The notes beneath the pieces are model-generated. The model had not been told where the DNA came from, did not search any database, and worked only from the letters and a program-made list of their open reading frames with translations. A stretch of DNA of 64,000 bases, from positions 108,199,979 to 108,263,978 of the forward strand of contig NC_068985.1 in assembly GCF_001194135.2 (NCBI RefSeq). Reading direction: 5' to 3'. A program made the position numbers and the translations under genes. The stretch comes from Octopus bimaculoides (Eukaryota). This document shows, one piece after another, positions 12,780 through 56,600 of this stretch. Numbering within the stretch: position 1 is the first letter of the stretch; each line of letters opens with the position of its first letter.

Positions 12780-12913
12780 TCACATCCCAAAACAATAGGA
12801 TAAACTTCCAGTAGCGGTATGGTAACTGACTTTATTATATAATCCTGCTTCGTTAGACAGCACCATCTGATTTGGGGGTTTTTCAATGCATTGGAATTCG
12901 GTTACATAATCAC
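12780..12913 (-). CDS. Gene 1 probable last coding exon SDYVTEFQC...SYCFGM*
   Basis: TTCAG acceptor, phase 1, open 44 codons to TGA; AATAAA about 100 nt downstream. Confidence 0.6.
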
Positions 12914-14992
12914 CTGAATTATATATATATATATAAAAAAACGTGTCAACAAAATATTAATATATTTTTACAAGGCAATAGTTCTTGGAATTAATTAGTC
13001 TTAAATATATATTTTTAATAAGGTTTTGAAGATTATTTCAAGATTAAAAACAGAATGTCTGTCTATGTATGTATGTATGTATGTATGTATGTATGTCTAC
13101 ATCTAAATGTAGATGCAACCAGAGAGGAAACATAAATGAAAATATAAGTTGAGTACTTTGTATGTTACTTCATAACTTTATCTTCTGTATTTTTCATAAC
13201 CTCGGAACAAAGTAATTAAAAAGTAATCTTCTTATCAGACAACCAGCCCTTAATTTTAATGTAGCAAAATTATTAATATTTCGTTTTAGAAAATATATAT
13301 TACTTACTCAAAATTCCTCCTGCTGGAACAAACTTGCGAAGTATATTGAAATGCAGGGATAAAAATGTTTCCGCGTTCGAACTTCTGTATTGGCTTACTG
13401 TTATTGAAAATGAAGGTGTCATTTGCAATACTTTTGGTTTGATGATATCAGTCGGGTCTTGTGGCTCAGGAGCATAGCCAGTAATACCGGAATGCATCCT
13501 AAAAATTATTCCGTTGAGACTTCCCAAGCAATTAGTGTTTGGTGCATTTTTCACTTGACCATAAACAAATACACCTGTAGAATAAAGACAATTTATTTAA
13601 AACATTACATAAGAATAAAGTATAAATTTATTTTACATTGAATTTTCAGAATGATAAAAATATTGCTTTTTTTGAATTTGAACACTTGCATTGTATTAAC
13701 AACCAGAAGTAACATTTTAAATCTTGGAGATGAAAATATTGTTTATGCGCCTTTAATAATTGTTATGAGACAGTGGGACAAGCATATCTCCATGGCGAAC
13801 TCCAGCTGGCAAAAATATTGAATCTCGTACCTGCTTGCTCATCAGCCAAAAGAAAGATTTCAGTTTGGTTTCTGCATTGAATACTATCAGTAAAACACAA
13901 GTCTGTCGAACAGTTTAATGGTTTTAATAGAACACCTAGAAAGGGAAAATAAAACACAGAAAAAGAATTTTGAAATATTACCTTCTTGTGTTTGTTGTAT
14001 CTTGAGAGAGTTATTATAGGAATAATGAGCAGACGTGAGTGAATATATGTTTACTGAGTAAAGTGCCCATACAAACATACACACTCAGAGGTATATAGGT
14101 TTCTTAATTGAATACTAAATAAGTCTAGCTACACAGCTAAATAAGACCCAAAAAACAAAAATAAAATCGTAATTTTCTGTAAAATAGTATTAGAACGATT
14201 ACATTAATTGCTGATTGTTGGTAAAGTAATTGACAAAAAAAAAAAAAAAAAAAAAAGATAATTCGATTATGTGAAAATCATTAATTGTTATAAATTAAAT
14301 TCTTTAGCTTTCAAAGTACATTTAAAACTATAAATAATAACATGTAATTATTGTGTTGAAAAACCCTTCCCCGTGTAGCCTCCGACTTTCTTTTATCCAA
14401 AAAGGGTTTTTAAACCCAGTGCATACAACGTATTATTTATACCTCTAATTGTAGTTCGAGATCCAGTTCTAAAAAAAAAAACATTATTTCACGTTCTCTC
14501 GAAAACTTATAAATATTTATGCAATCAATTTTTTCTAGAATTAAACGGTAATTTATTACAAACTAATATTGTGGTATCATGATTATTAACGTATGCTGAG
14601 CATGTTATGGAGCTTTAGAATAAAGAGGTTAAGTAAAATTACATAAAGATTATTCTTAAGAAAGCCGTAAAATTTGTGAATCTCTTCTTTAGTATTTACT
14701 TAAAATCTCACAAATGAACCAAGTAATTAATAAACCCAACCTTGACATGATTGTTCTGTCAAAAGAGAGAAAAAATGCCAGTGTCAATTTGCTCTATTAA
14801 GAAATAACCCTGCAAGCCATCCTTAGTATTCATCAATGGCAGAACATAGTTACAATGGATAAAGCTTCTCTTGTGTTATTTAGAAATGTCTCTGGTAAAA
14901 AGTCTTTACTGTGAAGAAAATAGTTCAAATCAAATACAATATTTTTCTCACCATTAGAAGGTTATTTCTTAATCGAACAAAATGACACTGGG

Positions 14993-23100: not shown

Positions 23101-24199
23101 TTTGATCCAGTAGCCTCGAACTCCATCTGGTCCCAGAGACTTCCAGTTGCTCATTTTTCTGCTGATTTCCTTTACTTCCCTAACTGAAATGACTAGTTTT
23201 GCCTGTTTCGGACAGACTGCTATTTGTTTCAGTTCTTGCAACCATTCAGCATCCTTCTTGTGCTCCGTGTCTTTGCTCCAGATGTCACTCCGAACCCTTT
23301 GACTTTCAATGTTATCTAGTATCAACTTTTCATCTCTACACTCTCCATTTATTTCTTTATAGAATCTCTTCTAATCTTCTCTGAATAACCTATTCTGGTG
23401 GTATCCCTTCATTCTTTGGCCGTATCTCACCATATTTGCTTTCTTTGCAACGAGGCACTGTTTCAGTTCCTCCATTACTACTTTCAGGCCCTTTCTTTCA
23501 ATAGTATACTTCGTTTTCAGTGCCCTGTATTTTTGCTCGCTTTTAAGCTCCCCTTTCTCTTTTCGGTCTAACACAGAGATTTTTTTCGAAAGCATATCTA
23601 ACCCTGCCCGGATTCTTCTGTTCCACCATGGATCTTTTCTTCTGTCACTCCTATTATGTTTCTTTTTCTTGACAACGCCACCCACATTTTCTGCTACAAC
23701 AATACTTGCTGCCTTGATCAAATTATTTGGTTCTGTGATGTTGTTTGTTCTAATATATTTCAGAATTTCATTGACATTTTTTGTTTCTTGGTTCAATTTC
23801 CATCGATCAACCTTTTTAAGGTTGCAAATAATGTCCATATCGTTCTCCAGTAGTCTTACCTTTATTCTATCGTAGATTGCCTTTTGTTCATCTGTCATAT
23901 CGCTATTACTTTTATTGTCTTCTTTTAGATCATCTATATGTCTTTCATCAAGTAAGCTAACACTGCTCCTTCCTGTGCTATGAGATTACTCTTATTAATA
24001 AGAACTGTATTTTCATTGTTATCTCTGCTGCTATTTTCCATGACCCATCTTTTGATAGCTTCGAGCTCTACTTCTGTGAACCAGCAATTTTTTCTTATTG
24101 CTCTAATTTGATCACATAGTGAGTTGAAACAATCCCCTTTTTCTCCAATGATCATACATACGTTGTCAGTAACCCCTAATTTGAGCACCATTTTCTTTA

Positions 24200-32300: not shown

Positions 32301-33792
32301 TCTAAAATACGATTAATGTAGTATTATGTATTTTTAGAATATACTACGTAATTAGTCTTTCCTACATTGCACAGTAAGTATAATTCAGTTATATCTTACC
32401 ATCAACTATATTTCTTTTCCACATCAGAGAAATTTTATTAAGAATGGTCATAAAAAAATAGGGGAGAAATAAAGAAATTGTGAAGGAGGATTTATGAATC
32501 TAACATTATTGAAAATCATCATATTTTTTTATTCCAATACTATTAAGTCGCTTATCTCTCAACCGTTAGTCAGAGTTTATTGCTGTCAATGTTTGATACG
32601 ATGAACATAAATTTGGTGAGGTAGATCAATGAGATGTGGACAGAGTGGTTACGTATTGTAGAGAAGCAACCTGCTGTTTGTAACAACGATCCCTTGAGCT
32701 GGTTTAAGCTACCATGCCTATCTATTTGGTAGCTTTCTTCAGTTACATATTTACATATTTTGGTAGATTTCTTCAGTTACGTATTTAAAACCCAGACACA
32801 ATGTGATAATATCTATGATCTCTGCTTATGACTTTCAACAAAATTTCATAGATGAACCAAGGGAGCATTCAAAGGAGACCTTATGACAACCATATCCTCA
32901 GCGTAGTGAAGAACAGTGGTACACTGCTGTGATTGTAGCTATGGTGAGATTTATTGATAATACTTTAATCGTTACTATAAATAGCTTAAAGTATATAAAC
33001 GATAATGTAATTTTCTAGATATTATATATGAGTAAATTTATGTTTTTTATATTCTGAAATATGTTTCGGAAATTTCGTGTTATCTTATGTATTTATTACT
33101 AATTTTAAAAGTTTAAAAGCAGAATATTGGATAATTTATCAAACATGTCACATAAAAAGTTTCATCGTATTTTATGAATTAACCGACGCATTTACAAAAA
33201 CAAAAAAAAAACCCAAAACAAGACAAAAACAAAACAAAACATAAAACCCCAAAACTCGTCATTTTTCAATAAAGTTTCATAAAATTCTATACATTTTATC
33301 CGTAATTTCTACAGGTTGTATTTAAGCGAAAATATTACATATAGAACGAAATCTAGGATAGTAGTGCTAAACTTTTTACATTAATCATTGCAGATCTGTA
33401 CGTTTGATACCTAGCTGTAGAGCATGGCAATCATGGATACATTTAGATAAATAATAACATATAATTTTAGATTTTATAATTTAAACAACCATAACAAATT
33501 CATTTCAACAAGACGTATATGGTAAAGTCATCTCAGTTTAAATATTTCGTTATCATGACCTCAGGAGCTTGTCATTAAAGTGGTATGAATGATAAAATTA
33601 CCTTCTTCAAACAGTTCTTCATTCACTTTGTATTTAGTGACAACCATTGATGTTAATGGAGTTACGAAATTATACTGTGAAAAACAAGAATATTAGTTTT
33701 AGGACAACAGTAGTATTAATAAGGAAACTATACATGAAATATTTCCATCATCGACATTACATTTCTTACGTTTAGATTGCTTATCATTATTA

Positions 33793-34383: not shown

Positions 34384-36246
34384 AATAATAGGGAGATGTA
34401 GAGAAAGTTAACATAAGATGTGCTGCATGAATGCACATACTAGATTAGTGACAGGCAATGAGTAAGAGAACATACAATGAAAGAAAAATGATTCAAAGAC
34501 AAAGGTGGTGCTGAGAAAGTATATGTATGTATGCATGTATGTATGTATTATGTATGTATGTATGCGTGTATGTATGGATGGTTTTATGTATGAATAGATG
34601 GATAGATGGATGGAAGGATGCATGCATTTGTGTATGTTAATATTGTTATATCTAATTTTATTCCAATATATTAACTTTTTTTTATTTTGAAAAGGAGCAT
34701 TCTTTTCATTATTTTGTATAAACACACAATAATTTGATGGAAGTTAGATTATAATTAAGTAATATTCGTAGCCACTTTAACATGATTGCCCGTTCGAGCG
34801 GGCTCTACTGCGACTTTTTAACCCCAAGAGGACATCTCCTCTAGCTGGTTAACGATGCACAGCTGCATCCGATAAAATTGTGAGCAGGGGTGCGAACCCC
34901 TACCATCTCCTAGCAACGGGACAAGTAGACCAGTCCTGGTTTCGAGCTATTTCTGCCACTCCTCAATACTGGACACTTTGTCTGCCAAAGATGATGGCAG
35001 CACTCTACTCTACGCAATATGTATATATTTCAAGCGAACACACAGCCGCTGATTTTGCAACAATTTTACTTGTTCGGCAAAATGAGTCCGATACAACAGA
35101 TACCAGATTTGAAAAATAAGTACTCTTGTCGAGCAGACTTAATTAAACTTTCATGAGGTGCCCCAGCATGAACGCAGGCAAATAAGTGAAATTAGTAAAA
35201 GAATAAAAGTGCATTTATCAGACATTGACTGACATCGATAACTAATAACAAATAAATTATATTATTTTTAAAAATATTATTAAAATAAAGATGTAATTGA
35301 TAATGATATCCTTTTTACTCACCTTTAGAGCTAAATTAAGAATATCATGACGCACTTCATTTGTTTCGTCTTCCATGAGAAGTTGTCTCAAAGTGAGATA
35401 AGCATAAGTCTTTTCAGTAATTTCAGAAAATGACTGAATACTAGTCAAACTGGAATTTTGCGAAAAACCATCATCTGAGGTAAAGTCATCTCCATATAAT
35501 TCTAGCTCCAAATTTTCCTTATTTGGCCCCAAGTGGTTTGTCATTGTTAAACTCACATTTATAGTTGGTCGGTATTCTTGCGGCAAAACACCGGAAACAA
35601 CTAATTCTGATCCTTTGAAGTAGTTGCTAAATGATGTAGAACTAGTATTAACAGCATCATCTAAGTAAACAAATGTAATATCCTTTAATAAAATGTTAGA
35701 TATTTCTTTAAAAAGATTTTCAATTTGAAGTTTACTGTCAGAGTCTATGTAGATCCTCCTATTAAATCCTCCGTTTTCTGTGGCAAGCTTACGAAAAAAA
35801 TTATTGATAGATTTTTCTCCGAAACAAAGGGTGAATAATGAAATCTCTTCGTTGGCTTCTCTGAAATTTTTCTTGATTTCTTCGAGGTTAGTGACTCCTT
35901 CTGTTGGATATCCGTTAGTAAGAAATACGATAATACTTTTCTTCGTAGAGGTTGAAGTTGATTTGTGTTTCTCTACACTTTGAAGGAGAGCAGCGTTAAT
36001 GTTTGTACCTGAGAAAAAAGTAAAATTACATATTCAGAAAAAAATAACAGAATGTTTGTACTAATAAGGAATTAGGATCATCAATACAAACTTTATAAGA
36101 AAGCATCCCAGACGTATAATTCAAAATTAACCGTAACCAAATCGTTTGGCATGAAAAGATGAATTTAATCATTAGATGTTAAAATGTGAAACTATTTTAA
36201 AATGTTTAAGCAACATGCGAGTTCAAGATAAAAGTTCCATAACAGC

Positions 36247-37025: not shown

Positions 37026-39502
37026 GGACTGTAATACTTAGTAATAAGAGCTTTAAAATAGGGACATGAAGGACCATTATCAAATAGTGGACTTACATTT
37101 TAACATTCTGAATAAAAGTAAATTCAATAGTTGGAAAGTAAAAGGTGGCGAGCTGGCAGAGTTGTTAGCACGCTGGACGGAATATCTTAGCGGCATTTCG
37201 CCCGTTGCTACATTCTGAGTTCAAATTCCGTCGATGTCGATTTTGCCTTTTTGCCTTTTATCCTTTCGGAGTCGATAAATTAAGTACTAGTTGCATACTA
37301 GAGTAGAAAAGAATATTTAGAGTGTAAGACAAAGGATGCCATACTGAAGAGGAAAACTAATAGGTTGGGAATATAAGTTAATGACGGCTACTGCAAAGCT
37401 GGTTAGCGGCTAAATACAACGAAACTTCATCACAACTTCTAAAGGAAGTGTTGGCACTGCAACGTCTGCCAGCAATCACACTAACATATTATAACATGAC
37501 ATATATGAGAGTAAAAAGAAGTAAGCTAGCAAAACAGCTTCGTCCTTATCTTCTGGATACGGAATGTAAAATGATAATTTAAGAACTAAATAAAGTATGT
37601 AGCAAAAAGGAACTTTGCCGATAATTTGAAGAACTATATATATCCATGAACTCACGATAATAGAATTAAAGTTAACCCTGAGTCTTCTTCCTTAATATGA
37701 TCTAGTAAAATTTAACGATATTGATAGATTGTAATGCAATGATAAACAAAATTCGATATAAATATAATAATTTTTTTTTAACTTACTTCCATTGGTTTGA
37801 AGTTCCTTAATGTAATTTTTGCCTAATTTTTTGTTAAGATTGTTTGATATTAAAAATTCGTCCTTCATCCACGAAACGCCACTACTGAATGTTCCGATGA
37901 GAAATTTATCAAGTTCTGAATCGAGTTGATCAAGGATATTTTCCATAGCTTCGCTCATTTGTTCAATTTTACGACCAGACATTGATGCACTGATATCAAG
38001 CATAAATACAATGTGCTTTGGAAGACTTGGTAAGGAATCAGGAGTGAAGAAGTGCACAAAGTAGCCATCAACTGCCTGCGAATTTTGAAGAGAAAATAGA
38101 ACATGATGGTTTATTTTAATAACATTTTACGGGAAATTATTCCAACTATTTAGTATGAGATATTGCTAGCAGATATGATAATATTTAGTCACAATATACA
38201 GCATATCAAATATATAGTAATTGTAGTCCTGTTATCAGAAGAGAAATAGATTTATTTATGTTAACAACAAAATAAAAGATAACCCACTGTGCAGTTTGGA
38301 ATACCAGTATGAACCTTCGATTAATTCTTTTATCTAATCCAGAAGACACATACTTATAGATGTGTTCAACAACGTCCACTACATTCTCAGATCAAAGATA
38401 ATTTACCGTACATATCATTTTACTAGGTCTTTGGATTTTGTTATATAAATCTGTATATAGTCGGCTCTTTGCTTAATTTTCAAGATTTTATTTATCTAAT
38501 GAAAATGGTTAATTGTTAAACACTCAGCCGCTGCCACGTTTCTACCATCGTCATTTTAGAAGTTGTCGCTATTCTCCATGACTGTCTCTTGATGTTTAAA
38601 CCACCAAACAAACATAACAAGAAATCGATACCACAGTTTTAACCTAGTATTTCAATTCTCATTTCGTTTTCCTAATATGCACGCATTAAAAAATATTAAA
38701 AAAAACACTTACATCAACGCAGAAGTTAATAGCTTAGCTGAGTAATGTTTTTAACAAGTAAAATGTTGCCTCAATTGATCATCGCAAATTTGCCTTCATA
38801 TGTGAATATTTATCCTTCACCCCACAGTAAAATTTGACACCCCAATATCCAGTTGAAGTAGTCTATAGGGTGACACTTCAAGTACTAGACAAATCTTATA
38901 ACAAGTTAGCAATAGTTGCTTGCTTTTTTGATGAATAATCGCTTAATGTCAAGGATGCTCTTCTGGGTGCAATTGTAGTAGAAAATGGTTCGTCTCAGGG
39001 TTTGTACACTGCTGTCAAGTCTACGCTTACAAAAGATGTATCTATGAACAACAAACTTGGATTTGCCAGCGATCTTCCAAGATACTTAACATCTAGCTAC
39101 CAAGGCTATTAATTTGTGAAAAATGCCCCTTAGAGACCCTGAGAGATCCTGTGAGAAATTTGAAAACCGGTTGCCGTCCGCTCTCACAAAATTAACCGGA
39201 GCAAGTAAGATCGAGGAACCAAATCAATATAACATATGCGTTCAGTGGTGGGGGTTTTGCATTTCGAATGCACTCTGGAGCCTGAATGGTAAGCATCTCA
39301 TCGACTCAGAAAGGACGAAAGGCAGAATCAGTCTCAGCGATATAGCTATGCATATATACAATCATGTATGGATATAGGTATATAAGACGAAAATACATAA
39401 AGTATATTCCAATACACATACATAGACATATGGAAGCACGGGCACATTTAAAAATGACGAAGAAAGTGAATGGGAGAGATAATGAGATAAAGAGAGTAAG
39501 GG

Positions 39503-39598
<96 letters not shown>

Positions 39599-42500
39599 AG
39601 AGAAAGAATAAAAATAAAGTTTCTTGTATATGAAGATGAAATATGTTGTTATGAAGAAATTGTGATTTCTTCATAACACATACGTACACATTTATATCAG
39701 ATAAGATTATAGTATAATATTCCCTTTTAAATGACAAGATGAGAATTTGATTTGAAACAATAACTTACATATATTAAATTTGAATTATTTTGACGATCCA
39801 CATCATACTGTATTTTGAGTGAGCCTGCAACAACACCATCTATTCCTGAAGTTTCTTCTTGTTGTTTACGACTTGGGTTGTATTTGATGTAAACCTCTCT
39901 ACTGCTGATGTACTCAATTAAAGCAGAATCCAGCTCTGTTTTAAAAACAAGCAATATCTTAATTTGAATATTGATAACAAAGTTGAATAAATACCTCTTA
40001 TTTCAATATCACTTAACCTGATGAGATATAATTTAAACGACTTGATGGACTATCTAATGTTGACTGCGAATCAGTGTCATATTTACTGTATGATAATGTA
40101 AAGTGAACAGCGGCAGAATTAAATAATGTTTACTGCGGGTGGGTAAGTTTAGTTTGTCTGCAATAATGGACTGCGTAACATTTGATGATGAGATGGTACA
40201 AAATGTTCACAGCACAATATCTATTTTATGACAGTGTAGTAAGAAACTCTAGGTGAAGAGCTGAATGGCTGAAGGTCTTCAGAGAACAAGTACCTTCTCA
40301 TTTGTAAGTATTTCATCTCTCAATCCCTTAAAGTCTAAGAAACCGGCCACACCCAGGATACCCCTCTTATACTCCACTTTGTACTACTGTTTACATTGTA
40401 ACTAGTACCTGCTAGGTCTTTAAGACCACCCAGAGCCTAGAATTCCTTGGCTGTCGTAACCACTTCCGTTTGAGACACCAGTTAAACGTAGGGTATTATT
40501 GTACCTTCCGAAATTTTCTTTTATTCTTCCTTCACTACTAATGTATATAGTGAGGAATCATTACGCATACTATCGGAATGGTAACAATTAAGTTTGGAAT
40601 TTACTGTAACGCACTGTATTCTGTGTCAAGGGCAATCTTAATAAGTGATCGCCTGTGTAGTTATGCAATGAGAGTTGTTAGCAAGAGTATATTTAACAAG
40701 AGTGTGCCGTAACAAGAGGTAGTATAACATTTAATTTGATATTTGTATAGTAACCGACTGTTAACTGGAGGATAGATAACACTTGATATATGGGAAAATA
40801 TAATGCTTGCTCCAGAACAATGAAATGTTTACCGCAGCGCAGTGTAATTCTACTTGGAGAAGGAGACACTACTACAAGAGTGGGCACTTGGACATTATAT
40901 TGTTGACTCTAGAATGATATAATCGTTAGGAAGAGACAATTTTATCCCAGAGACATTATAATATTAGTAAATTGTAAACAAAATGACGTACGATTCCGAT
41001 GTGTATCATTATTCTAAGTGAATTGTATTTTCTTTATACAAGAATAAAAAGCAATTTTTAGACTATTTATTGATAATTGCATCTCTATAGTACTACCTAC
41101 GAGTAATAGTCAGAAAAAGTTGCCTCATGTTTCATATAGCCTGTCATCGGTATGTCATACTTATCTGTTACCCTTCGCAATGTAGTTGAATGATTATCAA
41201 TGCTAATCCGTCGGCAGTATGCCTTATATCTTTGCTGTTAATTCCCCACCTTCTATTTCTATATATGGTTCTTTGTAGTATTTTGTACAAGTATAGAACT
41301 TGATATAAGACTAGCGACTGTTGAACGTTTACTTCTGTTGACGTTTATATCAGCTTTATTTACTGCCTAAAGAAATGTTTAGATTTAACCCAGTATAAAG
41401 AAAAATTTTCGCTACAGAAACCTTTCTATTATCAGGAATGTGATTTTCTTTAATTTTGTAGTGCGCCCACACTGTGGAACATATAAAAAAACAGTGATTA
41501 AATAAGATTGATGAAGATAATGACAAATGAAGGTACAGAAAGAACCACACAAAAATGATTTGCCAACCTTTGTCAACGGTAATATCCGTTAATTTATTAT
41601 TTGTAATTTTTGGTACAGACACGTGAATAATATCTTGCGGTTCAGTAATGAAAACTTCAACTAAAAAGTCATCAATAATTTCACCAGTGGTCACATGAAT
41701 GTCGTGCCTGTATTTATTGTTCTGTCGTGTCAGAAGTTCTTGGTAAGTCAAGTTGTAAACTATATACTTCTGTGGTTCAACATTAACAGATATATCAAAG
41801 GCTCTTGTAAAGCGGTGTCTGGAAAATGATAAAAAAGAATAATTGAAATATTTTGGAGATATTCCAAAACTTCAAGAAATATCAAATAGTTGGGAAAATA
41901 TAAAATTACTCGACTTCAACAGTGCCAGAACTTTGTCCTGTTTCGCTGGTATATTTGTAAATATCTTTAGCAACTGATTTTTCCTTTACTTCTCCTACAG
42001 TCACATGTCCATCAATTTCCCTGCAATCGAAAATAAAATTAAATAAAAATAATTAACATTGAAAAATCTCAAAAATTACAGCGGTTAAATTTGACAGTTT
42101 GTACCAAAGGAAAGGAAAACACTCCATCCCGAAATAAAAGTATTTTGAAAAATGAAAATATATCAACTAGATTATGGCTGTCAGATCACAGTTTACTGAA
42201 AATAGCCACCCTCGGTTTCCAGCACGGCCTCCAGGCGCATGCATTTCTCATAGTGTCGTTGGGTGGACCTACGAACGCTTCCTTGATCTTGGCCACCAGC
42301 TCATTCTTAATGTTGCTGGCAGAGTATTTGACACATATTATAATCCATGATATTGCGATTGGAGGAATGAAGATACCAGAAATTAGAGCTGTTGATGTCG
42401 TAGAGATTCTTCGACAACCACGTCTGACTCATTCTGGAAGTATGGCAAGGGGCCGAATCCTGCTGTTACACATATGACCTTTCAGTAGCAATCCTATACA

Positions 42501-45464
42501 GCTAGGTATTAGCCACAGTTTCACATAGACGTTACCAGTTTCACATAGACGTTACCAGCTTCACATAGACGTTACCAGCTTCACATAGACGTCTAAATTG
42601 AGTCTAAGGCTCTATTCAGAAATACAGGTTTGCATGATGTCACCCTCACTGAAGACACATCAAAAGACCATCACGATTTGGGGGATCTTGGTTTTCATGA
42701 TTTCCATGTCATATCATACAACTTTTACAGTGTTCATAGAGCATTGGGCAGCAGTCATGATTTCGACATTTTGATAACTAGTGTGAATCATTAGAATACA
42801 AGTAACAATTTTCCAGTTACTTGTATTCCAGTTACTTTTCCAGATGCCATCCTGTCCTCGTATCAACTAACTTTTTCCCAGCTACAACTTTAATCTCCTG
42901 ACGAAAGTAAACATAAGTCATCAAAGTTTGCCCGAACATCCAGTATTTTAGAAGTTTAAAAATTTGAAAATTTTCCATTGTGTTCCAAATGTTTGTATGT
43001 AACAATCAAATAAACTCACATGGCGCCCACAATTGTATTAAGACTTGATTTGGAAAATAATTAACAAAATGAATCGTAATTATTTTGATAAAGTATTTCA
43101 ACAGAATGTTTCATTTTCACTGTTATGCACTTAATCAAATTTTCTTGAGGCCGTTTCCTGAGATATGAGAGCTTTCTAAATCATGGTGCGCTTGATGTGT
43201 CTGAAAGTCAATTTGAATACTTGTGTGTCGTCATAAATAGCAAAAAAAAACTGTAACAACATTTGTATAGAAATGTGGTTTTCTTACCGACGGGATGGTA
43301 TTATTTCTTTACTACCCACAAGGGGCTACACACAGAGGGGACAAACAAGGACAGACAAACGGATTAAGTCGATTATATCGACTCCAGTGCGTAACTGGTA
43401 CTTATTTAATCGACCCCGAAAGGATGAAAGGCAAAGTCGACCTCGGCGGAATTTGAACTCAGAACGTAGCGGCAGACGAAATACCGCTAAGCATTTCGCT
43501 CGGCGTGCTAACGTTTCTGCCAGCTCGTCGCCTTTCGACGGGATGGTATGTGTAAGTAGGGAAACGTAAGATGGGAAAAGTAAGTAGCTCGTTAAAGTAC
43601 AAAATCAACGGTATGAGATTGATATTAAAATTTATAGTTAGAAAGTAGATCTTCAAATGATCTTCATAACCAAGATGTTAGAGAAGGATGGACATTAAGC
43701 ACAAGTAGCTTAGTCAAGAGACTTTAATGGCATTCACAATGAGAAGCTTCGCTGAAGGCAAGTGCAATAATCATGCTTTCAACGGGATTCTCGAACGTGA
43801 TAGACCAGAAGCTGGAGAGCAAACATCTGATAGATCTTTTGCTCCTAATGGTGTGATTGCTTATCTGGTCTTCTTTCAGTTCTGAGATACTTGTAGGTAA
43901 ATTATCGGCAAGTTGAGTGGGTATACTCTGCTTGTGGCTTATTCTACAACAATGATATAACTGATGTGGGGCATTAAAAATACCAAGGCTTTTTAAATAC
44001 CTTAAATACTTACGATTTCCCTAAAAATGTCGCAATACATCTGTGGGCCATGCGCAGGGATTTCTGTATGTGATGCAAAGGCTGGTATCACATACAGAAA
44101 TTGGAACGTTTAGATAAAGGTATATTTTTATCGAGAGACAGAAAGAGAGAAGAAAGAGAGAAGCTGAAGATTTAAAGGTAAATGAACGGACATCCTTTTC
44201 ACCAGTGGGGTTGCGTTTATAAAATTTTAAGGATCGGTAATCTAAGTTAAAAACATGATTTGAATAAGATTAATTATGCGCGTGTGTGTGTGTGTGTGTG
44301 TTTGTGTGGTGTGTGTGTGTTTGTGTGGTGTGTGTGTGTGTGTGAGCAGTATTGAGCTAGAAATAGAACCGGCAGACAATATAATGTTTTGTTTTAAAGG
44401 TACTTTTACAGGCTGGGAGGAGTGGAAATTTGCAATCTGCACAGTGTGTCCCCTTCAAATCTTTATTGTTTTGCAGGCATTGAAATGTTGAACAGACACT
44501 TCTAAATGAACGCTTGTTTTTAGATATTGTAGGCTGTGCTTCCACGACTATGCACCAGCTACTGGGATGGTTTGTATTTATGGGTTTAGTTGTACGTGGG
44601 AATATGAACGGAAATGAAGAGAAAAATGCTTTAATCAATCGCTTAACAGTTTCAGACAGATCGGATTTTCAATCAAAAATAATCTTCATAAAACTGTCTG
44701 CCCTGATCAGTTAACGACTGTATTTTATCTAAGCTCACGGAAAGCGTATACCGCACTCTGTGATGTCATTCTTCTAATTTTCCACACGCAGCTGTGATTT
44801 ATTCTTAATTTCTAGCGGGTACTAATAGCTAAATAATAAAAAAAAAAAACTTAAGATTCGCTCTGACGTATGATACTTTGATTACATTTTCATTTGCAGA
44901 ACAGTTTCCCTCTTTACTCTTTTTACTCTTTTACTTGTTTCAGTCATTTGACTGCGGCCATGCTGGAGCACCGCCTTTGGTCGAATCAAATCGACCCCAG
45001 GACTTATTCTTTGTAAGTCTCGTACTTATTCTATCGGTCACTTTTGCCGAACCACTAAGTTACGGGGACCTAAACANNNNNNNNNNTTATTCTTTGTAAG
45101 CCTAGTACTTATTCTATCGGTCTCTTTTGCCGAACCGCTAAGTTACGGGGATATAAACACACCAGCATCGGTTGTCAAGCGATGTTGGGGGGACAAACAC
45201 AGACACACAAACACACACACACATATTTTATTTTATTTTTTAATTTTTTTTTTACTTGTTTCAGTCATTTGACTGCGGCCATGCTGGAGCACCGCCTTTG
45301 GTCGAATCAAATCGACCCCAGGACTTATTCTTTGTAAGTCTCGTACTTATTCTATCGGTCACTTTTGCCGAACCACTAAGTTACGGGGACCTAAACACAC
45401 CAGCATCGGTTGTCAAGCGATGTTGGGATGACAAACACAGATACACAACATATACACAACATAT

Positions 45465-45497
<33 letters not shown>

Positions 45498-47219
45498 CAC
45501 ATATATACGACGGGCTTCTTTCAGCTTCCGTTTACCAAATCCACTCACAAGGCGTTGGTCGGCCCGAGGCTATAGTAGAAGAAACTTGCCCCAAGATGTT
45601 ACGCAGCGAGTTTGAACCCGGAACCGGTTGGAAAGCAAGCTTCTTACCTCACAGTCACGCCTACGCTGATGTATGCTTTTTCAAATCGTTGGGTCATTAA
45701 CCGAACGTCTAAATATAATTAATGACTTCTAAAAATTAATACATCAAATGGTCCGCTGTATTCGATAACTTATACCAAGAGAACTTCGTTTTCTTTGGCT
45801 AAAAAAGAAACAGCAGTAGGATAGACTAGAAATATATGTTGCGGAAAATGAATTATACTTACATAGAAAAATCCGATATAAATGAATTAAGGGGCACCAT
45901 TACGTGTAAGTCTGCGCTGACTGAAAAATTGTGCGGGTTATAATATTTCATGGAAACTAAAGTGGTAGCAAATCGATATTTAATATCACTGATTACATGA
46001 AGTGATTTCAGGTTTACGTTCTGAAAAAAATCCAAGAAATATCGTAAATCACTTAAATAGAGCTTTATTTACTTTTAACCTTTATGTGGCAATCAAAAAA
46101 TCCATAAAATCAATTTTGTTTAGGGGATAAGTAATAAACCTCTAAGATTATCATATTTAATCCTATTTGAAAAACAAAGACGAGCATTATGGCATAGATA
46201 TTTCAAAAGTTAGCCACCCACAGGAAATGCAAATATTTATTGCGCTTCTTACACGTTTTATATTTTGATGAGTATAAAACCAATCGCAATTACATTATCT
46301 TTCAATGAGAGGTCATGGTGACCACAAAGAACCCGAGACTTTTAATATTCATACATATGGACTTGTTAATGCTTGGCCCTACATGATCTCTGGCACGAGC
46401 TGACCAATGTTTAGAGACGTTCCAGCCAGGACAGTTCAGTCTTGTTAAGTGTATCTAGGAATGCATGATTGAATGTGTTCCTTTTCTTCAAACCCCCAGA
46501 GTGTGATTTAAAGAAAATTTAGCTATTATCCAAAGCAGATCAAGGAGATATGACGAAAAAGGCTTCCTTTGTTAAACCATGTTTAGAGAATAAGGGGAGA
46601 ATGCTAAATGCATATTTTAAACAATATACTAATTGTAAAATACTATACAAAATTAATAATCTCAGTTATTAATAAGAGATGAGATTGGGTTTGAAAACTT
46701 AATGTCTGGATATAAATAATCTTTTAAACAAGCAAGTTGCAATACGCAGATAAAAATCTAACAATACTTCCTATTCCACTAAGAGTGTTAATCTTAAAAA
46801 GACCCTGAGAGACCCTTTGAGACACTTAACAAAAGGTTGCAACCTGCTCTCACAGAATTAACCGGAACAAGTAATGTCGAGAGATCTGAGAAGTAAAATA
46901 CATAACAACAGTCCAAAATAACATATGCGTGAGAACAAAAGTTTAGTGGGTGAGGGTTTTGCCTTTTGAATTAACTCTGGTACCTGACTGGTGCCCATCT
47001 CATATCGATCCAGCCTGTGCAAAAGGCAGAGTCGGTCTCACCAATATAGTTATGCATAAATATACGCGTGTATGTATATAAGGATATATAACAAAAGCAC
47101 ACAAAATACATGCCAGCATACATAGAAATATGGAATCGCGCACATACTCAAAAGTGTAGATGAAAGTGAACGAGAGAGATAATGAGATAGTGAGATAGTG
47201 AGATAGAGGGAGACGGGCT

Positions 47220-47318
<99 letters not shown>

Positions 47319-47588
47319 AGCAAATAGAAAGTGAAAGAATAAGAATAAACAATTTATGAAGAATAAATAATTTTTAAACAATATATGAAGAAAAAAAAAA
47401 TAATGTAATGAAGAAATGAATGTGATACACGTTCACACATAAACACAGATACACGCAAGCACACACACATACATACACACACACACACACATNNNNNNNN
47501 NNNNNNNNNNNNNNNNNNNNNNNNNNNNNNNNNNNNNNNNNNNNNNNNNNNNNNNNNNNNNNNNNNNNNNNNNNNNNNNNNNNNNNNN

Positions 47589-47635
<47 letters not shown>

Positions 47636-50600
47636 TAACATATAGTTATAATATTATAATCATTTTTAAATGGCAAAATGGGAATTTGATGTAAAACAAT
47701 AACTTACATATAGTGAATTTGAAATATATTGACGATCTACACAATATTCTACTTCGAAGAAACCTGCGGCAACACCTTTCTCTATAATTTCTTCTTGTTG
47801 TTTACGACTTGGGTTGTATTTGATATAAATTTCTCTACTGCTGATGTTCTTAATTAAAGCAGAATCCAGCTCTATTGAAAATCATTAACAATAACTTAAT
47901 TTACATCTATAACAGACTTGAATGAATATCTGTAATTTCAATATCTTCAAACCTAAAGAGATATAATTTAAAAGGTTTGATGGACTATCTAATGTTGACT
48001 GCGAATCAGTGTCGTATTTACTGTGTGATAATGCAACGTGATCAGCGGCAGAATTAAATAATGTTTACCTTGGGCGAGTAATGTTGTCAGTGTATGACAT
48101 CTTAATACTAGTTTTAATTAGTAATAATGGACTGCGTAACATGGTGATGATGAGATAACACAAAATGTTTACTGAATGATATCTATTTTACAACAGTATA
48201 GTAAGAAACTCTGATGGGGGCGGGGAGCTGAATAGTTAAAGGTCTTCAGAGAACAAGCACCTTCTCTTATGCAAGCATTTCGTTTCTTAATTCCTGAAAG
48301 TCTAAGGAACCGGGTACACTCAGGATGCCCCTCTTTTCTCTCTATTTCATGCTACTGTTTGCATTGTAAATAGCACCTCCTGGGTGTTCAAAATTCCCCA
48401 GAGCCTAGAATTCCTTGGATGTCGTAACCACTTCCGTTTGAGACACCAGTTAAACGTAGGGTATTATTGTACCTTTTCTTTTATTCTTCCTTGACTACTA
48501 ATGCATATAGTGAGGAATCATTATGCTTACTACCAGAATGTGAACAATTAAGTTTGGAATTTACTGTAGCGCACTGTATTGTTTGTCAAGGATGATCTTA
48601 ATAAATGGTAGACAGTATAGTGATGCAGTGAGAGTGGTTAGTAAGAGAATATTTAACAAAAGCATGCCGTAACTAGAGGTAGTATAACATTTAATTCGAT
48701 ATTTGCACGGTAATGGACTGTTAACTGGAGGATAGATAACACTTGATATATGGGAAAATATAATGCTTACTGCAGAACAATGAAATGTTTACTGCAGCGC
48801 AGTGTAATTCTACTTGGAGAAGGAGGCACTACTACAAGAGTGGGCACTTGGACATTATATTGTTGACTCTAGAAAGATATCATCTTTAGGAAGAGACAAT
48901 TTTATCTCAGAGACATTATAATATTAGTAAATTGTAAACGAAATGACATTTGTACCATTTTGATGTGAAGTATTTTCTTTATCGGAGAATGAAGATTAAT
49001 TTGTAGACAATTTATTGATAATTGTAGCTCTATAGTACTTTTTATAAGTATTGATAATAATGAAGAAAGTAATATAATCTTTGATATAATTTGTCATCTG
49101 TATATCTGTTGTGTCGACGCCCCCAAGCGAAGCAGTAGGCTCGACCAAGACTTATAAATAGAGGTAGTCTGACCGTGATAGGAGTTGAGTGGTTACCTGA
49201 CAGTTGAATAGAGTGGACTGACGGTCGACTGACAGTTGAGTAGCTGTCGAGTAGCAGTCGAGCAGAGATCATCCGAAGGTGCGAGATAGCAGTAGCTTGA
49301 GACATAACAATATCATACATTTCTGTTAGCCTTAGCAATGTTGTTGAATGTTTATCAATTCTAATCCTTCCAGAGTAGGCCTATCTTCTTTTCAATTTGC
49401 CACCTTATATTCCTATATGTGGATCTTTATTGCATGTTGTACAAGTATAGAACTTGAAATGAGACTAGATTTTTATTAACGTAGTTTTCTTATATTTCCC
49501 TTACATCTACTTCTGTTGACTTTTATTACATCTTTGTTTACTGCCTCCAACATAAAAAATAAAAATTCGCTACAGGAACCTTTTTATTAACAGGAATAGC
49601 TTCTGTATTTTTGAAGTGCACCCTCTTTGTGAACCATATAAAAGCAGTAGTTAAATGAAGTTTATAACGATAATGAAAAAATGGAAATATAGAGAAAACC
49701 AATCATAAATGATTTGCCAACCTTTGTCAACGGTAATATCCGCTAATTTATTAATTGTAATTTTTGGTACAGACACGTGAATAATATCTTGCGGTTCAGT
49801 AATGAAAATTTCAACTAAAAAGTCATCAATAATTTCACCAGTGGTCACATGAATGTCGTGCCTGTATTTATTGTTCTGTCGTGTCAGAAGTTCTTGGTAA
49901 GTCAAGTTGTAAACTATATACTTCTGTGGTTCAATATTAACAGACATATCAAAGGCTCTTGTAAAGCGGTGTCTGGAAAATGATAAAAAAAAAACAACTG
50001 AAATACTTTGGAGATGTTGCTATTAAAATACTAAGTGCAAGAAATATCAAATAGTTGGGAAAATATAAAATTACTCGACTTCAAAATAGCCAGAACTTTT
50101 TCCTTTTCCTACGTCCTTTTCGTAAATATCTTTAGCAACTGATTTTTCCTTTACTTCTCCTACAGTCACATGTCCATCAATTTCCCTGCAATCGAAAATA
50201 AAATTAAATAAAAATAATTAACATTGAAAAATCTCAAAAATTACAGTGGTTACATTTGACAGTTTGTACCAAAGGAAAGGAAAACACAATATCCCATCCC
50301 GAAATAAAAGTATTTTGAAAAGTGAAAATATATCAACTAGATTATGGCTGTCAGATCACAGTTTACTGAAAATAGCCACCCTCGGTTTCCAGCACGGCCT
50401 CAAGGCGGCTCCGGAATCTGCATTCCTCACAGTGTCGCTGACAGGACCTACGAACATGTCATATTTTACAACTTTTTCAGTGTTCATAGAGCATTGGACA
50501 GCAGTCATGATTTCGACATTTTGATAACTAGTGTGAATCATTAGATTACAAGTAACTACTTTCGAGCATTTAGATGCTTTCAAGTCCTGTATCAGCTAAC

Positions 50601-53600
50601 TTTTTTCCAAGCTACAACTTTAATCTCCAACGCTGTTGACTGTTCACCAAGCTGTTCCTGACGAAAGGAAACATAAGAAGTCGTCAAAGTTTGCCCGAAC
50701 ATCCAGTATTTTAGAAGTTTAAGAATATTTGAACATTTTTCCATTGTGTTCCAAATGTTTGTATGTAATAATCAAATAAACTCATATAGCGCCCATAATT
50801 GCATTAAGACTTGATTTGGAAAATAATTAACAAAATGAATCGTAATTATTTTGATAAAGTATTTCAACAGAACGTTTCATTTTCACTGTTATGCATTTAA
50901 TCAAATTTTCATGAGGCCGTTTCCTGAGATATGAGAGCTTTCTAAATCATGGTGAATTTGATGTGTCTGATATTCAATTTGAATACTTGTGTGTTGTCAT
51001 AAATAGCAAAAAACAGTAACAGTATTTGTACAGAAATGTAACAAGATGGTATGAGTAAGTAGCTCATTAACATACAGAATGAACAATATGTGAGAGATAA
51101 TGAAATTTATAACTGGAAAGTAAGTCTTCAAATAATCTTCATGACTTTTAGAAAACAGTATAACGCGCTCTCTGCTGTCATTCTGTTTTCCCACTCGTAG
51201 CTGTCTATTAATATCTAGCACTTGTAGCTAAATGAATAGACCAGCTTCTTTCTGAAGTACTTTGATTATATTTTACTTTGCAGACTAGCTTCCCTCTCCT
51301 ACTTTCTTGTCGAATGGTTTTCCTTCATTGCACGTCTTCATAACATCCGACTGAGAATGAAACTTATCAATTCTTACCAAAAATGTTGATAATCACTAGT
51401 TAAACAGGCATGAGAATGTATAAACTGCTTTGTAAGCAGAAAGTTTTACATAAAAAACATGTAAGCTCTATGCCTTATAATCAGAATGCTAATAAGAATA
51501 TTAGAAATACAATGCTAAATTTACGACATCGTCAATTAGTAAATTGCTATAATTTCAATATATATATATTTTTTTACAAATCGTTGGGTCATTACTTGAA
51601 CATCATAATATATTCAGTGACTTCTAAAAATTCACACATCGCACTGTCCGGTTTATTTGGTATCTTATTCTAAAGAACTTCGTTTTCTAAGGCTAAAAGG
51701 GAAACAACAGTAGATTAGACTAGAAGTATATATCGTGAAAAATGAAATTTACTTACATAGAAAAATTCAATATAACTGATTTAAGAGGCATCATTATGTA
51801 TAAGTCTGCGCCGACTGTAGAATTGTACGGGTTATAATATTTCATGGAAACTAAAGTGGTAGCAATTCTATATGAAATATCACTGATTATATGAAGTGAT
51901 TCCAGGTTTGCTTTCTGAAAATATAAAGTCAAGAAATATCGTAAATCACTTAAATAGATTTTTATTTAATATATACGGATCAAGATATTCTCGACTATGT
52001 TATCAAAGGTGGATTTGTGGTGATTGGAATGAATGTTTAAGTATTTAAGGTATTGTTAGGTTTGTGATAAGGGGAGTATTAGGAGGTTTATAACTTTAAA
52101 GTTACTTCTAAAAAGTTAGTAGTTTTGTGAGAATTTTCAAAAGTAATAGACAGATTTAGGCTAGAGAAAAAATTGTGTACATTTTTTCTAGCTCGTTCTA
52201 AAGAGGATTTATTCATGCTCTTATTTCTTTATTGCCCACAAGGGGCTAAACACAGAGGGGACAAACAAGGACAGACAAAGGGATTAAGTCGATTACATCT
52301 ACCCCAGTGCGTAACTGGTACTTTATTTATCGACCCCGAAAGGATGAAAGACAAAGTCGACTTCGGCGGAATTTGAACTCAGAACGTAAAGACAGACGAA
52401 ATACCGCTAAACATTTCGCCCGGCGTGCTAACGTTTCTGCCAAGCTCTGCAACTAGCAAGGCGTCATTTCTGTAGAGGCCTCACTTGAGGTTAGGGAAAT
52501 GTATTTCGAGCTGGTGGAGTATGTATAGTCCAACGAGATCCGTGACTTGGGCGGAGTCGGATGATCTCGTGATAATGTCAAATAAATTGCTATGAATATT
52601 GGTATTGTTATAGTGACTGACCCGGCACCAGAGTTGTTCTGAAAAGAAATAAGGAGTAGACAGTTACCTCCCTTGAAAGCAGTTGTCTCATCAATTGGTT
52701 ACTGGATGGCACACGTCGTGGTGCTGCATTGTGGGAGAATGAAATCTATAGCTTTTGGACGGCGCGACCAAAGTGATTAGACGTATTTTCTTCCTGCTGC
52801 GATTCCAAGTGATGTAACGGTAAAAAATAACCACATCTTGTATATGAATACAAACGCACAGAAAATGCCTTTATCTTTTTCTATACAAGTACTGTAATTT
52901 GCATTCAGTATCAAGATTAAAACGACTTACGGCCGTATTTGTAAATTCTTATCGTCTTGTTATTCTTGTATTTGGAGAATGTCTGCCTTCTACATTTCAG
53001 CTTTCTTTGTTAGGAGCATAAGTTCCTAAAAATGGTGACCCCGTGGAACGAATAGACAAGTTTATATTTTACAAGTTTACAGCGAATGAAAAAACAAAAA
53101 AACAAAAAAAAAAACAGACGAGTAGAACCGTTAACTGTTGTAAACGGTCGACATCTAAAAAATTTTTTTTCCCTTTCAAGCTTCGCCAACTTGCCTTCTC
53201 CAATTCCTTTTGGCGTTCCTCCACATTCCTTTCTTCTCAACGTTTTTTGCTTTTATAAAATGAACAATGTTCCGCTCTCTCAATTCAATGGGGAAGCGAA
53301 AATGTGGTTTTCGCAACTGGAATCCTATTTTATTGCTACCAGCACTCGCGAACCACTGGCCAAACTGCAAATCACATTGTCCGGCTTACCGTCCCCACTT
53401 GTTTCGTCTGTCTGGGATTTACTGACAGATGCACCAGATGGGATATCCTACGAGGAGTTTAACTTAGAGGTGCTTCGCAGAAACTCTCCGTCCGCTGAGA
53501 GCAAGTTCCGCTCATTGCCGCAGGATGAAACTATTTTTCTCTCGTATGCAGCCCAATACCCAGTCGGTGCTGGTGCATCTTTTGGACACCACTCTTATTG

Positions 53601-56600
53601 ACCAACTAGCCACCAAGGCAGACAAGATTCTTGAGTTCTCCAAAAACACAGACAGTCCAAGGATCAAGCTCATCATTGTATACAGCCCTGCTCTTACATC
53701 CCGGCGGGAAACTAGCCAGGGAGTCGTCTCCCTCATTGAAAATCTTCACCGTGCATTCTTCGTCCGAGACGCAAAATCTTCAAAGTCTTTTCTGGTAGAC
53801 ACAGGAGCCAGTGTTAACATTTGGCCTCGACGGTATACGTTCATCAATCTTGCTTTCTCGGACATTTCTTTGTTCCCGGTTAACCATTTTGCTATCCAGA
53901 CCTACGGTCAAATCTCCCTTACTCATGATTTGTCACTCTGTAGGTTATTTCGGTGGATTTTCATTATTGCTGACTTACCACATCCAATTTTAGGTACAGA
54001 TTTTCTTCACCATTATTCATTCCTCGTGGATGTCAGAGGACGTCGACTTTTTGATAGAACCATTTTCCTCACTGTCTCCGGAGAGGATACTACCCTTCCT
54101 GCTGTGAGTCTTTCATTCTTCGTAGCCGCTGCTGGAAACACGTATCTACAGTTACTTGCTTCATTTCCCGAATTAACGGATTTGACATTCCTGTTAACCA
54201 AGCTAGTTCATTCTACTAAGCATTTTATAACGACTAAAGGACCTTCTGTATTTTCCAGACCTCGTCGTTTATCTTCACAAAAGCTGCGGATTTACAGAGC
54301 TGAATTCAAGCATATGCTCCAGTTTGGCCTCATTCGTCTTTCCAAGAGTCCATAGGCCACGCCTCTGCACTTAGCAGAGAAAGGCGTCATCGATTTTCGT
54401 CCTTGTGGTGACTTTAGAAGGCTTAATACTGTCACGGTTCCTAGATCGCTATCCGATTTCACATTTTCAGGATTTTTCTTCAGCCCAACATGGATGCAAA
54501 ATTTTTCCCAAAATCCACCTGGTACGCGCATACCATCAAATTCCCGTTAACTCGGAAGATATACCCAAGACAGCAGTAACAACATCTCTCGGAGCATTTG
54601 AATTTTTATCCATGCCTTTTGGTCTTCGTAACGCAGCAAGAACATTAGCCTCATGCTATCTAAGATCCCAGATGAAGCAATGTCAAGGCAGGGAACTCAA
54701 AAGAGAGCAGCAGTATCCTTCACCAAAAGCCAATCCCATGCAATTGGCCAATTAAAATGTGATAACACTGGCGATGCCCTAGCACGGCCACAGCGTCAAG
54801 GCTGAAACATATAAAAGAATAAAAGAATANNNNNNNNNNCGAAGTTAAAATAAACGTCTAAGGGACAGAAGTATCCATTATACTACCGCTATATTATCTA
54901 TGTTTAACCATGGGCATACATATGCAAGCATATTATGCTCATAAATTATAGCAGGTAAAGACAAAGATAAACATGTGTTTATTAAGAATCAGAATTTAAA
55001 GGAAACAGGAAATGGAGAAATATTGATGAACAACAATTGTCTTACATCAATTGTTATTTATTGATTCAATACAAATAGACTGCATCCCGTCTAACAGCTG
55101 TTTCTGCTTCCAATGTTGTATGGCATTGCCATTGATATGCTAAAAATATTTATCATATCTGGTAATAAAACCTATCTGAAACATGGAACTTCATCAGAAT
55201 GAAGAATAAATAAAAAAATAATGTAGAGCCTAGAAAAGGGAAAAGTTGAATATGGTTGTAATCATACCATTTTGCTTGTGCATCTCTTTGGGATGTTAAG
55301 TATATGACTAAACATAAAATAGTACTTCATGGATTAATCCTTTGAACGTGGTCGGGGGTAGGATGGATAAATAATTAAAAATAAAGAAATTATAGTGGGA
55401 TACGCCAATAGGTTTTAGTCGGAGAAGGGGTGAAGATACAATAAGGCTTTAGATTAATCATAATAATTTATAATGATTACGTTTATAGTACTAATTAATA
55501 GGATTTATCACAATAAAGTGCTAACCGATTAAATATAATTTTTAAATTTTATTTACTAGTAGGTGGTTAAGCCCTTCCACCTGTTGTCCGAAGTGAGATA
55601 GGCCAAGGTCCAACGTTCGATATAATTGGTCAGTTGAAATTTAAAAATAAAAGACCAACTTTTGAGACTGTTATACGGGGTAAGATAAATAAATAAATGA
55701 ATGGGAAACTGGTGTATGTTGTAAGGGGCATTAAAACGCTTAGGACAGTATATACTAGATTAAAAAAATAAATATTATGGAATAAATATTGAGAGAGAAA
55801 CCTATTTGGACATTTAGGTAATAAGACGGTTAGGGGTGAAAATGGTCCAAATGTTTTTTTAAATAGGAACATGAAATTAGTAAAAACAATGAAATTATTA
55901 AAAACAATTTATTCTGTAGGAAAATTAGAAAAATATTTATGGTTAAGGGGAGGTAATAACCAGAGTAAGTGGCCTAAATTAGAGACTGCTGGTCTGCCAT
56001 CCAGTGCACAGAATAAGCGAGCTGACTAGCTCAACAGACAGCTAATTTCACCGCTAAGTGACTAAACAATCTATAAATCAGTCAGTGTAGTGGTCAATTA
56101 AATAAGTAAACATAAATATCCCTAATTAAATTAATGATTACAATTTATACTTAAAATAAAAAATTAAAATACTTGCAAATTATTCTTACAGATGCAGGTT
56201 CTTACTACAATTTGCTCATGCATGCATACTAAGTATCGTTGATTAGGTGCAATGAATTTAACCCACTTACCCTGGTTATTACCTCCCCTTAACCATAAAT
56301 ATTTTCCTAATCTTTCTACAGAATAAATACTTTTCATTGTTATTAATTTCACATTGCTATTTAAAAAAAAAAAAATGTCCGAATAGGTTTCTCTCTTAAT
56401 ATTTAATCCATGATCTTTATTATTTTTAATATAGTATATACTGTCCTAAGCGACTGGGTTGGAACTGGGAAAGTGCCATTACCTATAGCGTCCCAGATCA
56501 GCAACTGACTCCAGTTCTTTAAAACGGAAAAGTTAGCTACAGTGGTCGAAGCTAAAAGGCCCCATTTGTGACAGAAAAAGGCATCATCGTCGAGGTCTAA

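Follow-up and report, generated by a model that had tools for sequence, protein, structure and literature searches.

The inter-alpha-trypsin inhibitor heavy chains ITIH1 to ITIH4, represented by the structures 6FPY/6FPZ and 9C4F, have a signal-like N-terminus, a single VIT domain, and a vWA domain with a metal ion-dependent adhesion site (MIDAS) of the form DxSxS. The window analyzed here, a stretch of 64,000 nucleotides (nt) of the Octopus bimaculoides genome (contig NC_068985.1, positions 108,199,979 to 108,263,978), carries on its minus strand an ITIH-like gene with the same elements, but with two VIT domains, joined in series in the gene models, instead of one. By self-comparison of the window, exons 2–5 of this gene are present as two direct tandem copies, herein called cassettes A and B. 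Two kinds of described systems are close to this arrangement. Dscam1 is the type case for clusters of mutually exclusive alternative exons, and relaxed or asymmetric divergence after tandem duplication with concerted evolution is known for the primate opsin, RH, and globin duplicates. As in clusters of the Dscam1 type, the octopus copies are arranged in tandem, share their phases, have similar lengths, and diverge mostly at the protein level; unlike them, a whole four-exon block is repeated, in two copies only, and every gene model includes both copies. The opsin, RH, and globin pairs resemble the octopus cassettes in the raised ratio of nonsynonymous to synonymous substitution rates (omega) on both branches, the unequal branch lengths, the converted mosaic, and the short divergent island. 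In the octopus, however, the copies are exon blocks inside one gene.

The likeness to the vertebrate heavy chains extends over much of the protein, as cassette B and the vWA domain are collinear with residues ∼30–600 of human ITIH4 (9c4f, E = 6e-88) and also match ITIH1 (6fpy, E = 1e-69). In contrast, the C-terminal part is fast-evolving and unrelated to that of the vertebrate heavy chain, and the gene belongs to an octopod-specific tandem array. In a Pfam search of the RefSeq protein of this gene (P0121), an O. sinensis model (P0123), and a paralog (P0003), no match to ITI_HC_C (PF06668) was found, whereas bivalve homologs carry this family, and no DPHF motif, as in the DPHFII-type cleavage/linkage site, is present in the octopus protein. 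Full-text searches of the literature returned no paper in which octopus or cephalopods are named along with ITIH or the VIT domain, with the exception of a study of the O. vulgaris ink proteome (PMC10142993), in which ITIH-like transcript clusters are listed and the two-VIT architecture is not described.

In a first-pass annotation of the window, the differences between A and B had been read as a strong excess of amino acid changes produced by diversifying selection, mainly on copy A, with relaxed selection as the alternative. The analysis presented herein supports that alternative better than diversifying selection. The best-supported account, which we hold with moderate confidence, is relaxed constraint after an internal duplication of the VIT exons, with both reading frames maintained and with patchy gene conversion between the copies.

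Divergence and gene conversion between the cassettes

Each of the exon sets 2–5 encodes a VIT domain and the residues between it and the vWA domain, and all exons lie on the minus strand. Exon 1 (58838–58915), located by tblastn of P0121 with 100% identity, encodes a hydrophobic, signal-peptide-like N-terminus (MASRLLFVMFGAVYYLGITANGETVQ) and ends in phase 0. The first VIT module begins with exon 2A (51757–51914; 158 nt), which is included in the models P0121 and P0001, and continues through exons 3A (50075–50185; 111 nt), 4A (49722–49972; 251 nt), and 5A (47708–47871; 164 nt, ending in phase 0). The second begins with exon 2B (45863–46020; 158 nt), followed by exons 3B (41910–42020; 111 nt), 4B (41568–41818; 251 nt), and 5B (39769–39935; 167 nt). 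The splice sites of the two sets are AG/GT in 16 of 16 cases, and the open length is 684 nt for set A and 687 nt for set B, both in phase 0 at the start and at the end, so that A only, B only, or A plus B all stay in frame. Exon 6 (37785–38075, boundaries approximate), which starts the vWA domain and contains the MIDAS motif DISAS, is a single copy shared by both modules, and further downstream exons of the same gene extend over 12783–36006 (matches at 35323–36006, 33603–33677, 15673–15750, 13306–13575, and 12783–12914). By collinear homology (blastn and MAFFT), the duplicated unit A covers 46800–51984, reaching ∼70 nt beyond exon 2 on the upstream side and ∼900 nt beyond exon 5 on the downstream side, and unit B covers 39134–46097.

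At the protein level, Pfam recognizes VIT (PF08487, E = 6e-43) in two stretches of P0121, compared with one in the paralog P0003, and vWA (PF00092, E = 1e-18) at residues 505–680 of P0121, with DISAS at residue 510. The RefSeq model XP_052823892.1 (1050 amino acids) and an older model of 890 amino acids both contain A followed by B. Because A and B are spliced in series in the gene models of three Octopus species, these models predict a secreted VIT-VIT-vWA protein, which would be a clean case of internal domain duplication in a lineage-specific, fast-evolving octopod ITIH-like cluster.

The counts on which the first-pass annotation was based were reproduced in a recount. Exon 2 has amino acid changes in 17 of its 52 full codons against two synonymous changes (AGA/CGA and CCT/CCC), exon 3 has nine amino acid changes and no synonymous one, and all five nucleotide differences of exon 4 are nonsynonymous. 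In exon 5, many amino acid changes accompany four purely synonymous codons and a net length difference of one codon. The same holds for the motifs YRFA and SFIS, found in exon 2B and in exon 2 of the next downstream paralog (gene 2; 740–877, minus strand, used as an outgroup), against YRIA and SVIL in exon 2A. The exon boundaries were reproduced as well, but exon 5B falls outside the span given at that time (41568–51914). In total, A and B differ at 65–68 nucleotides, with 10.2 synonymous and 57.8 nonsynonymous differences. The five nonsynonymous differences of exon 4 are the residue of recent homogenization, and with a neutral nonsynonymous fraction of ∼0.75, all five would be nonsynonymous by chance in about 1/4 of cases.

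The introns provide a yardstick for these values. Next to exons 2 and 5 and in most of intron 4, the Kimura two-parameter (K2P) distance between A and B is 0.19–0.29. It is 0.07–0.11 in the introns of a low-divergence tract at 49720–50981 of unit A (partner in B at 41566–43215), and 0.066 in a second such tract in intron 4 (48677–48980). The longest identical runs within the first tract measure 125, 125, 79, and 70 nt and are partly or wholly intronic; under permutation, the mean maximum was 36 nt and the 99.9th percentile 64 nt (p < 2e-4). A and B have been homogenized by gene conversion, in a patchy manner that involves the 5′ part of exon 3, exon 4, and the adjoining intron. A further “identical run” of 87 nt was spurious, and is due to (GA)n microsatellites at 39435–39640 and 47151–47362, which occupy homologous spots downstream of exon 5. 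The conversion was initially read as proceeding from B to A. This reading was revised, since the comparison with O. vulgaris identifies several of the residues common to both copies as A-type, so that B received them from A: the B cassette of O. bimaculoides has the A-type residues N3, L44, and the A of “RAFD,” and the B cassette of O. vulgaris does not.

As a consequence of gene conversion, the A/B comparison is a mosaic of different ages, which confounds any comparison of nonsynonymous divergence (dN) with the intron yardstick. In the unconverted exons dN is 0.20 and synonymous divergence (dS) is 0.13, and in the converted tract dN is 0.02. Neither dN exceeds the divergence of the corresponding introns (0.20 against 0.19–0.29, and 0.02 against 0.07–0.11), and the comparison with introns argues against diversifying selection. 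Within the tract, the first 64 nt of exon 3 together with exon 4 are only 1.6% different, against 7.2% in the tract introns (p = 8e-5). The final 47 nt of exon 3 (50075–50121 in A, 41910–41956 in B), in contrast, form a divergent island with 14 differences, of which 13.3 are nonsynonymous (dN = 0.47, dS = 0.07). The 14 differences in 47 nt are well above the 7.2% of the tract introns (p = 9e-6), and the dN of the island exceeds even the divergence of the old introns, though not significantly.

Codon likelihoods were calculated with our own GY94/F3x4 program, and the VIT exon sets of five paralogs located on this chromosome served as outgroups. Several selection tests were run, and their p values are uncorrected. 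The pairwise omega between A and B was 1.98, with p = 0.052 in a likelihood-ratio test (LRT) against omega = 1. The protein-guided MAFFT codon alignment had misplaced the indels of exon 5, and their correction by hand from the paralog codons barely changed the results (omega = 2.08, profile-likelihood interval ∼1.01–4.95, p = 0.047). On the branches, omega was 1.88 for A and 1.83 for B (1.7–1.9 over runs), against 0.34 for the background, a difference of about five times, and the joint omega of A and B departed clearly from the background (p = 1e-6, ranging from 1e-6 to 3e-5 over runs). Against omega = 1, however, the branch tests gave p = 0.15 for A, 0.35 for B, and 0.076 for both jointly. 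In partitions by exon, no exon was significantly above omega = 1, with values of 3.8 for the A branch in exon 2 (p = 0.14) and of 1.0 for both branches in exon 5. Simulation with the intron substitution spectrum gave a neutral synonymous fraction of ∼0.25–0.26, to be compared with the observed 10/68 (one-sided p = 0.019).

The excess of nonsynonymous differences is therefore real, and omega lies far over the background of 0.34, but it is not robustly above 1 (p = 0.076–0.35 on the branches). Relative to omega = 1 the excess is nominal and fragile; by the refuting condition set in the first-pass annotation (omega not significantly above 1 after correction), diversifying selection is not established. 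Regarding the proposed prominence of copy A, this cassette has indeed accumulated about twice as many substitutions as B (49.5 vs. 23.9, p = 0.003), as well as more lineage-specific amino acid changes (40 vs. 24, p = 0.046), but omega is equal on both branches.

Both cassettes have remained open. The probability of finding no stop codon after 68 neutral substitutions is 0.045, and none was seen in either A or B. From the intron indel rate, ∼5.7 exon indels would be expected, whereas the pairwise alignment contains one net event (p = 0.023). When polarized by the paralogs, the exon indels resolve into three events, each of one codon and in frame: exon 5A lost one codon and gained another, and in exon 5B a GTT codon was duplicated once. 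These results argue that both reading frames are maintained by selection.

The sequence of events began with the tandem duplication of a segment of ∼5–7 kb, containing exons 2–5, inside an ITIH-like gene that encodes a signal peptide, a VIT domain, and a vWA domain with MIDAS. Once the module was present twice, the purifying selection acting on either copy probably loosened, and both would then have changed their amino acids at a nearly neutral rate (omega of 1–2, vs. 0.34 among the paralogs that have a single VIT). Copy A would have changed about two times more than B, while selection would have kept both frames and all the splice sites. Recurrent short conversion would have erased the divergence over the 5′ part of exon 3, exon 4, and the adjoining intron, leaving old divergent patches in exon 2, in the 47 nt that close exon 3, and in exon 5. 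The striking nonsynonymous and synonymous counts would thus result from the sum of these processes, together with the small-sample noise of dS, and diversifying selection is not demonstrated.

Orthologs and age of the duplication

The O. vulgaris protein CAI9723174.1 (P0137, 2709 amino acids) fuses three neighboring ITIH-like genes and contains the true A and B cassettes, in that order. The unusual residues of A are common to O. bimaculoides and O. vulgaris, as seen in HIIS, YR[I/V]A, STVGADL, IMMPL, and S[V/I]ILNFS, and further in EK[D/N]VGKGKSSGYF, IKNISSREIY, and RQYISNSL. Because both species have them, these residues predate their split. The O. sinensis protein XP_036358745.1 (P0123) also has two VITs, but its 5′ part is chimeric and its gene range spans 240 kb: its “A” exons 3–4 do not differ from those which the upstream paralog has in its O. 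vulgaris ortholog, and its exons 1–2 match another paralog. Orthology is limited to exon 5A, to cassette B, onto which exon 5A is spliced, and to what follows. This model had been taken as the cassette A ortholog, which gave an apparent acceleration of A in O. bimaculoides (“24 vs 4 unique changes”), and was dropped for being chimeric. With the true O. vulgaris cassette, the lineage-specific amino acid changes in A are 17 in O. bimaculoides and 23 in O. vulgaris, and those in B are 14 and 10, respectively.

The two homologs found in Argonauta have one VIT each. As judged from this distribution, the duplication is shown to predate the divergence of O. bimaculoides from O. vulgaris and O. sinensis, and to have arisen after the Argonauta lineage had separated. 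The old divergence of 0.19–0.29 between the A and B introns compares with ∼0.06 for introns between species. The calibration of dS and introns between species comes from gene 2 only, for which locus L031 of O. bimaculoides was compared with L036 of O. sinensis.

Between species, the amino acid divergence is 16.2% for VIT-A and 15.4% for VIT-B, against 10%–11% for the vWA and middle part of the same gene. Lower values were obtained for its single-VIT neighbors, both downstream (gene 2, with 6.1% for the VIT and 5.4% for the vWA and middle part) and upstream (gene 3, with 7.9% and 7.2%, respectively), and VIT-A and VIT-B differ from these neighbors with p = 5e-4 to 0.013. In view of an intron divergence of ∼6%, both cassettes appear to have evolved at a nearly neutral rate since the species split. 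Gene 2 itself has 19 nucleotide and 14 amino acid differences between L031 and L036 (dN 0.026, dS 0.036, maximum-likelihood omega ∼1.07), and recent omega may be high in general in the VIT region of this family, with small counts.

Paralogs, repeats, and assembly of the region

The gene is one of a series of ITIH-like paralogs, at least six in number, that are arrayed in tandem along a single chromosome (108.19–108.42 Mb and 110.15 Mb; loci L031–L035), all on the same strand and with the same exon structure, among which omega is 0.34. One of them, L035 (110147500–110151700), has no exon 2 in the stretch examined, and its RefSeq protein (P0007) has a different N-terminal segment. Its orthologs in O. 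sinensis (P0134) and O. vulgaris (P0015) have exon 2, which may indicate an exon loss in O. bimaculoides or a gap in the assembly. On another chromosome, an intronless homolog lies within an open frame of 730 amino acids (L003, C14:12262731–12263396), with 40% identity over all four cassette exons, and could have arisen as a retrogene or represent an independent VIT-vWA gene that lacks introns.

The introns of the gene also contain remnants of retroelements. At 22033–23370 (minus strand) there are weak matches to reverse transcriptase (PF00078, E = 4e-5 and 3e-4), below the Pfam cut-off, and within another remnant at 53056–54355 (plus strand) the open reading frame at 53056–53601 matches DUF7041 (PF23055), while the overlapping frame of 295 amino acids at 53468–54355 has no Pfam match. 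A dispersed repeat of ∼230 nt, present at 43295–43526 and 52215–52447 with 91%–92% identity, is out of register with the duplication and is probably a short interspersed element.

Two runs of N interrupt the region, both of them intronic, and neither affects an exon or a reading frame. The first, of 10 N (45077–45086), interrupts intron 2 of B at a distance of 777 nt from the closest exon, and has on both sides an exact repeat of 148 nt (44929–45076 = 45250–45397), which is probably an artifact of local assembly or gap closure. The second, of 96 N (47493–47588), is located inside a (CA)n repeat of the intron between exons 5A and 2B, 119 nt past the donor of exon 5A. Gaps of this kind, one of them flanked by an exact repeat, could raise the suspicion that the duplication itself is an assembly artifact, arising from two haplotypes or from a misjoin over the N runs. 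We consider this scarcely credible, because A and B differ by 15%–25% in their old parts, far beyond heterozygosity, and the homology to unit B is collinear over the 96-N gap (46800–47319 with 39134–39604, and 47617–49106 with 39676–41156). In addition, the junction between unit A and exon 2B (45087–47492) is free of gaps, and the order A then B recurs in the gene model from the separately assembled genome of O. vulgaris, which together make the duplication real; in O. sinensis, exon 5A is likewise followed by cassette B.

Competing explanations and significance

Several points weigh against relaxed constraint as a sufficient account. The point estimates of omega are consistently above 1 (1.5–2.1), with the pairwise interval at ∼1.01–4.95, and, if the module is partly constrained, as the retention of its frames indicates, an average omega of at least 1 implies that some sites are above 1. 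A divergent island within a homogenized tract is also the pattern expected if selection opposes the homogenization of a functional difference. Moreover, gene conversion could itself repair stops and frameshifts, which would weaken the argument from frame maintenance, and that A and B are expressed and included together is a prediction of the gene models in three species. It is possible, although we regard it as rather doubtful, that positive or diversifying selection for novel binding specificities drives apart the VIT modules of a secreted protein, perhaps one of immunity or of the matrix, and resists conversion at the exon 3 island. The omega estimates, the pairwise LRT (p = 0.047–0.052), and the binomial test against the neutral spectrum (p = 0.019) are in agreement with such selection, as are the survival of an island with dN = 0.47 in a converted tract, the conservation of both the A-type and the B-type forms of this island between O. 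bimaculoides and O. vulgaris, the maintenance of both frames, and the faster evolution of the whole gene relative to its neighbors. However, no branch or per-exon test is significant (p = 0.08–0.97), with several tests uncorrected; dN is not above intron divergence; and exon 5 has an omega of 1.0. The changes themselves look like decay of constraint, since several of those in A are hydrophobic swaps (F to I/V, S to L, and V to I) at positions that are invariant in the paralogs and in Argonauta, and A of O. vulgaris has radical changes in invariant motifs (HRF to HSS). Multinucleotide codon changes inflate the nonsynonymous count in the island, and the single-VIT gene 2 also reaches an omega of ∼0.7–1.1 between species, with small counts. 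More tentative still is the proposal that the VIT modules are diverging recognition surfaces kept apart by positive selection, in which the terminal 16 codons of exon 3 (EKDVGKGKSSGYFEVE in A and KYTSETGQSSGTVEVE in B) would be a specificity determinant protected from conversion.

Two other explanations concern the use of the copies. Cassette A (or B) could consist of decaying pseudo-exons that are skipped in the real mRNA, the models with both being annotation artifacts. The nearly neutral rate of A and its larger number of changes at invariant positions would fit this explanation, either set can be skipped without loss of frame, and Gnomon left out exons 2A–4A in O. sinensis. Neither transcript nor peptide evidence was found: in the homology search there was no transcript-derived protein fragment over the 5A/2B junction, the 90% cluster of the protein has no transcriptome member, and none of the ITIH-like transcript clusters in PMC10142993 has strings specific to the A or B cassettes of this gene. 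Decay is nonetheless unlikely, given that A has no stop (P = 0.045–0.085), indels that are only in frame (p ∼ 0.02), and eight of its eight splice sites intact, and that it is still open in O. vulgaris. In A, exon 4 and the 5′ part of exon 3 are also much better conserved than the adjacent intron, and with omega equal on A and B, A is not the sole odd copy. As for an alternative use of A and B as mutually exclusive exon blocks, which would give two isoforms with different VIT domains, the equal phases, the near-equal length (684/687 nt), the preserved frame of every combination, and the divergence of the sequences with their splice sites kept are what would be expected. This arrangement is very improbable, because the two cassettes are in series in all the models (two of O. 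bimaculoides, one of O. vulgaris, and the 5A-to-2B junction of O. sinensis), and RefSeq lists no alternative isoform in the protein cluster. Repeats of the docking-site or selector type were not seen either, although no search aimed at them was made.

Relaxed constraint after the internal duplication, combined with patchy conversion and the maintenance of both frames, is therefore the account that we prefer; positive selection may have contributed in part, as the omega estimates above 1 and the exon 3 island suggest, but is not demonstrated. Its methodological meaning is that simple counts of nonsynonymous and synonymous changes can be deceptive for tandem duplicates in which conversion has mixed ages, and that an automated, ortholog-based codeml analysis at this locus would be corrupted by the chimeric XP_036358745.1 or by the three-gene fusion CAI9723174.1. 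For the family, the significance is modest, and consists of a clean internal domain duplication in the octopod ITIH-like cluster. If the tentative proposal of conversion-protected recognition surfaces were true, the VIT-VIT-vWA architecture would be specific to this lineage and would serve a new function in Octopus.

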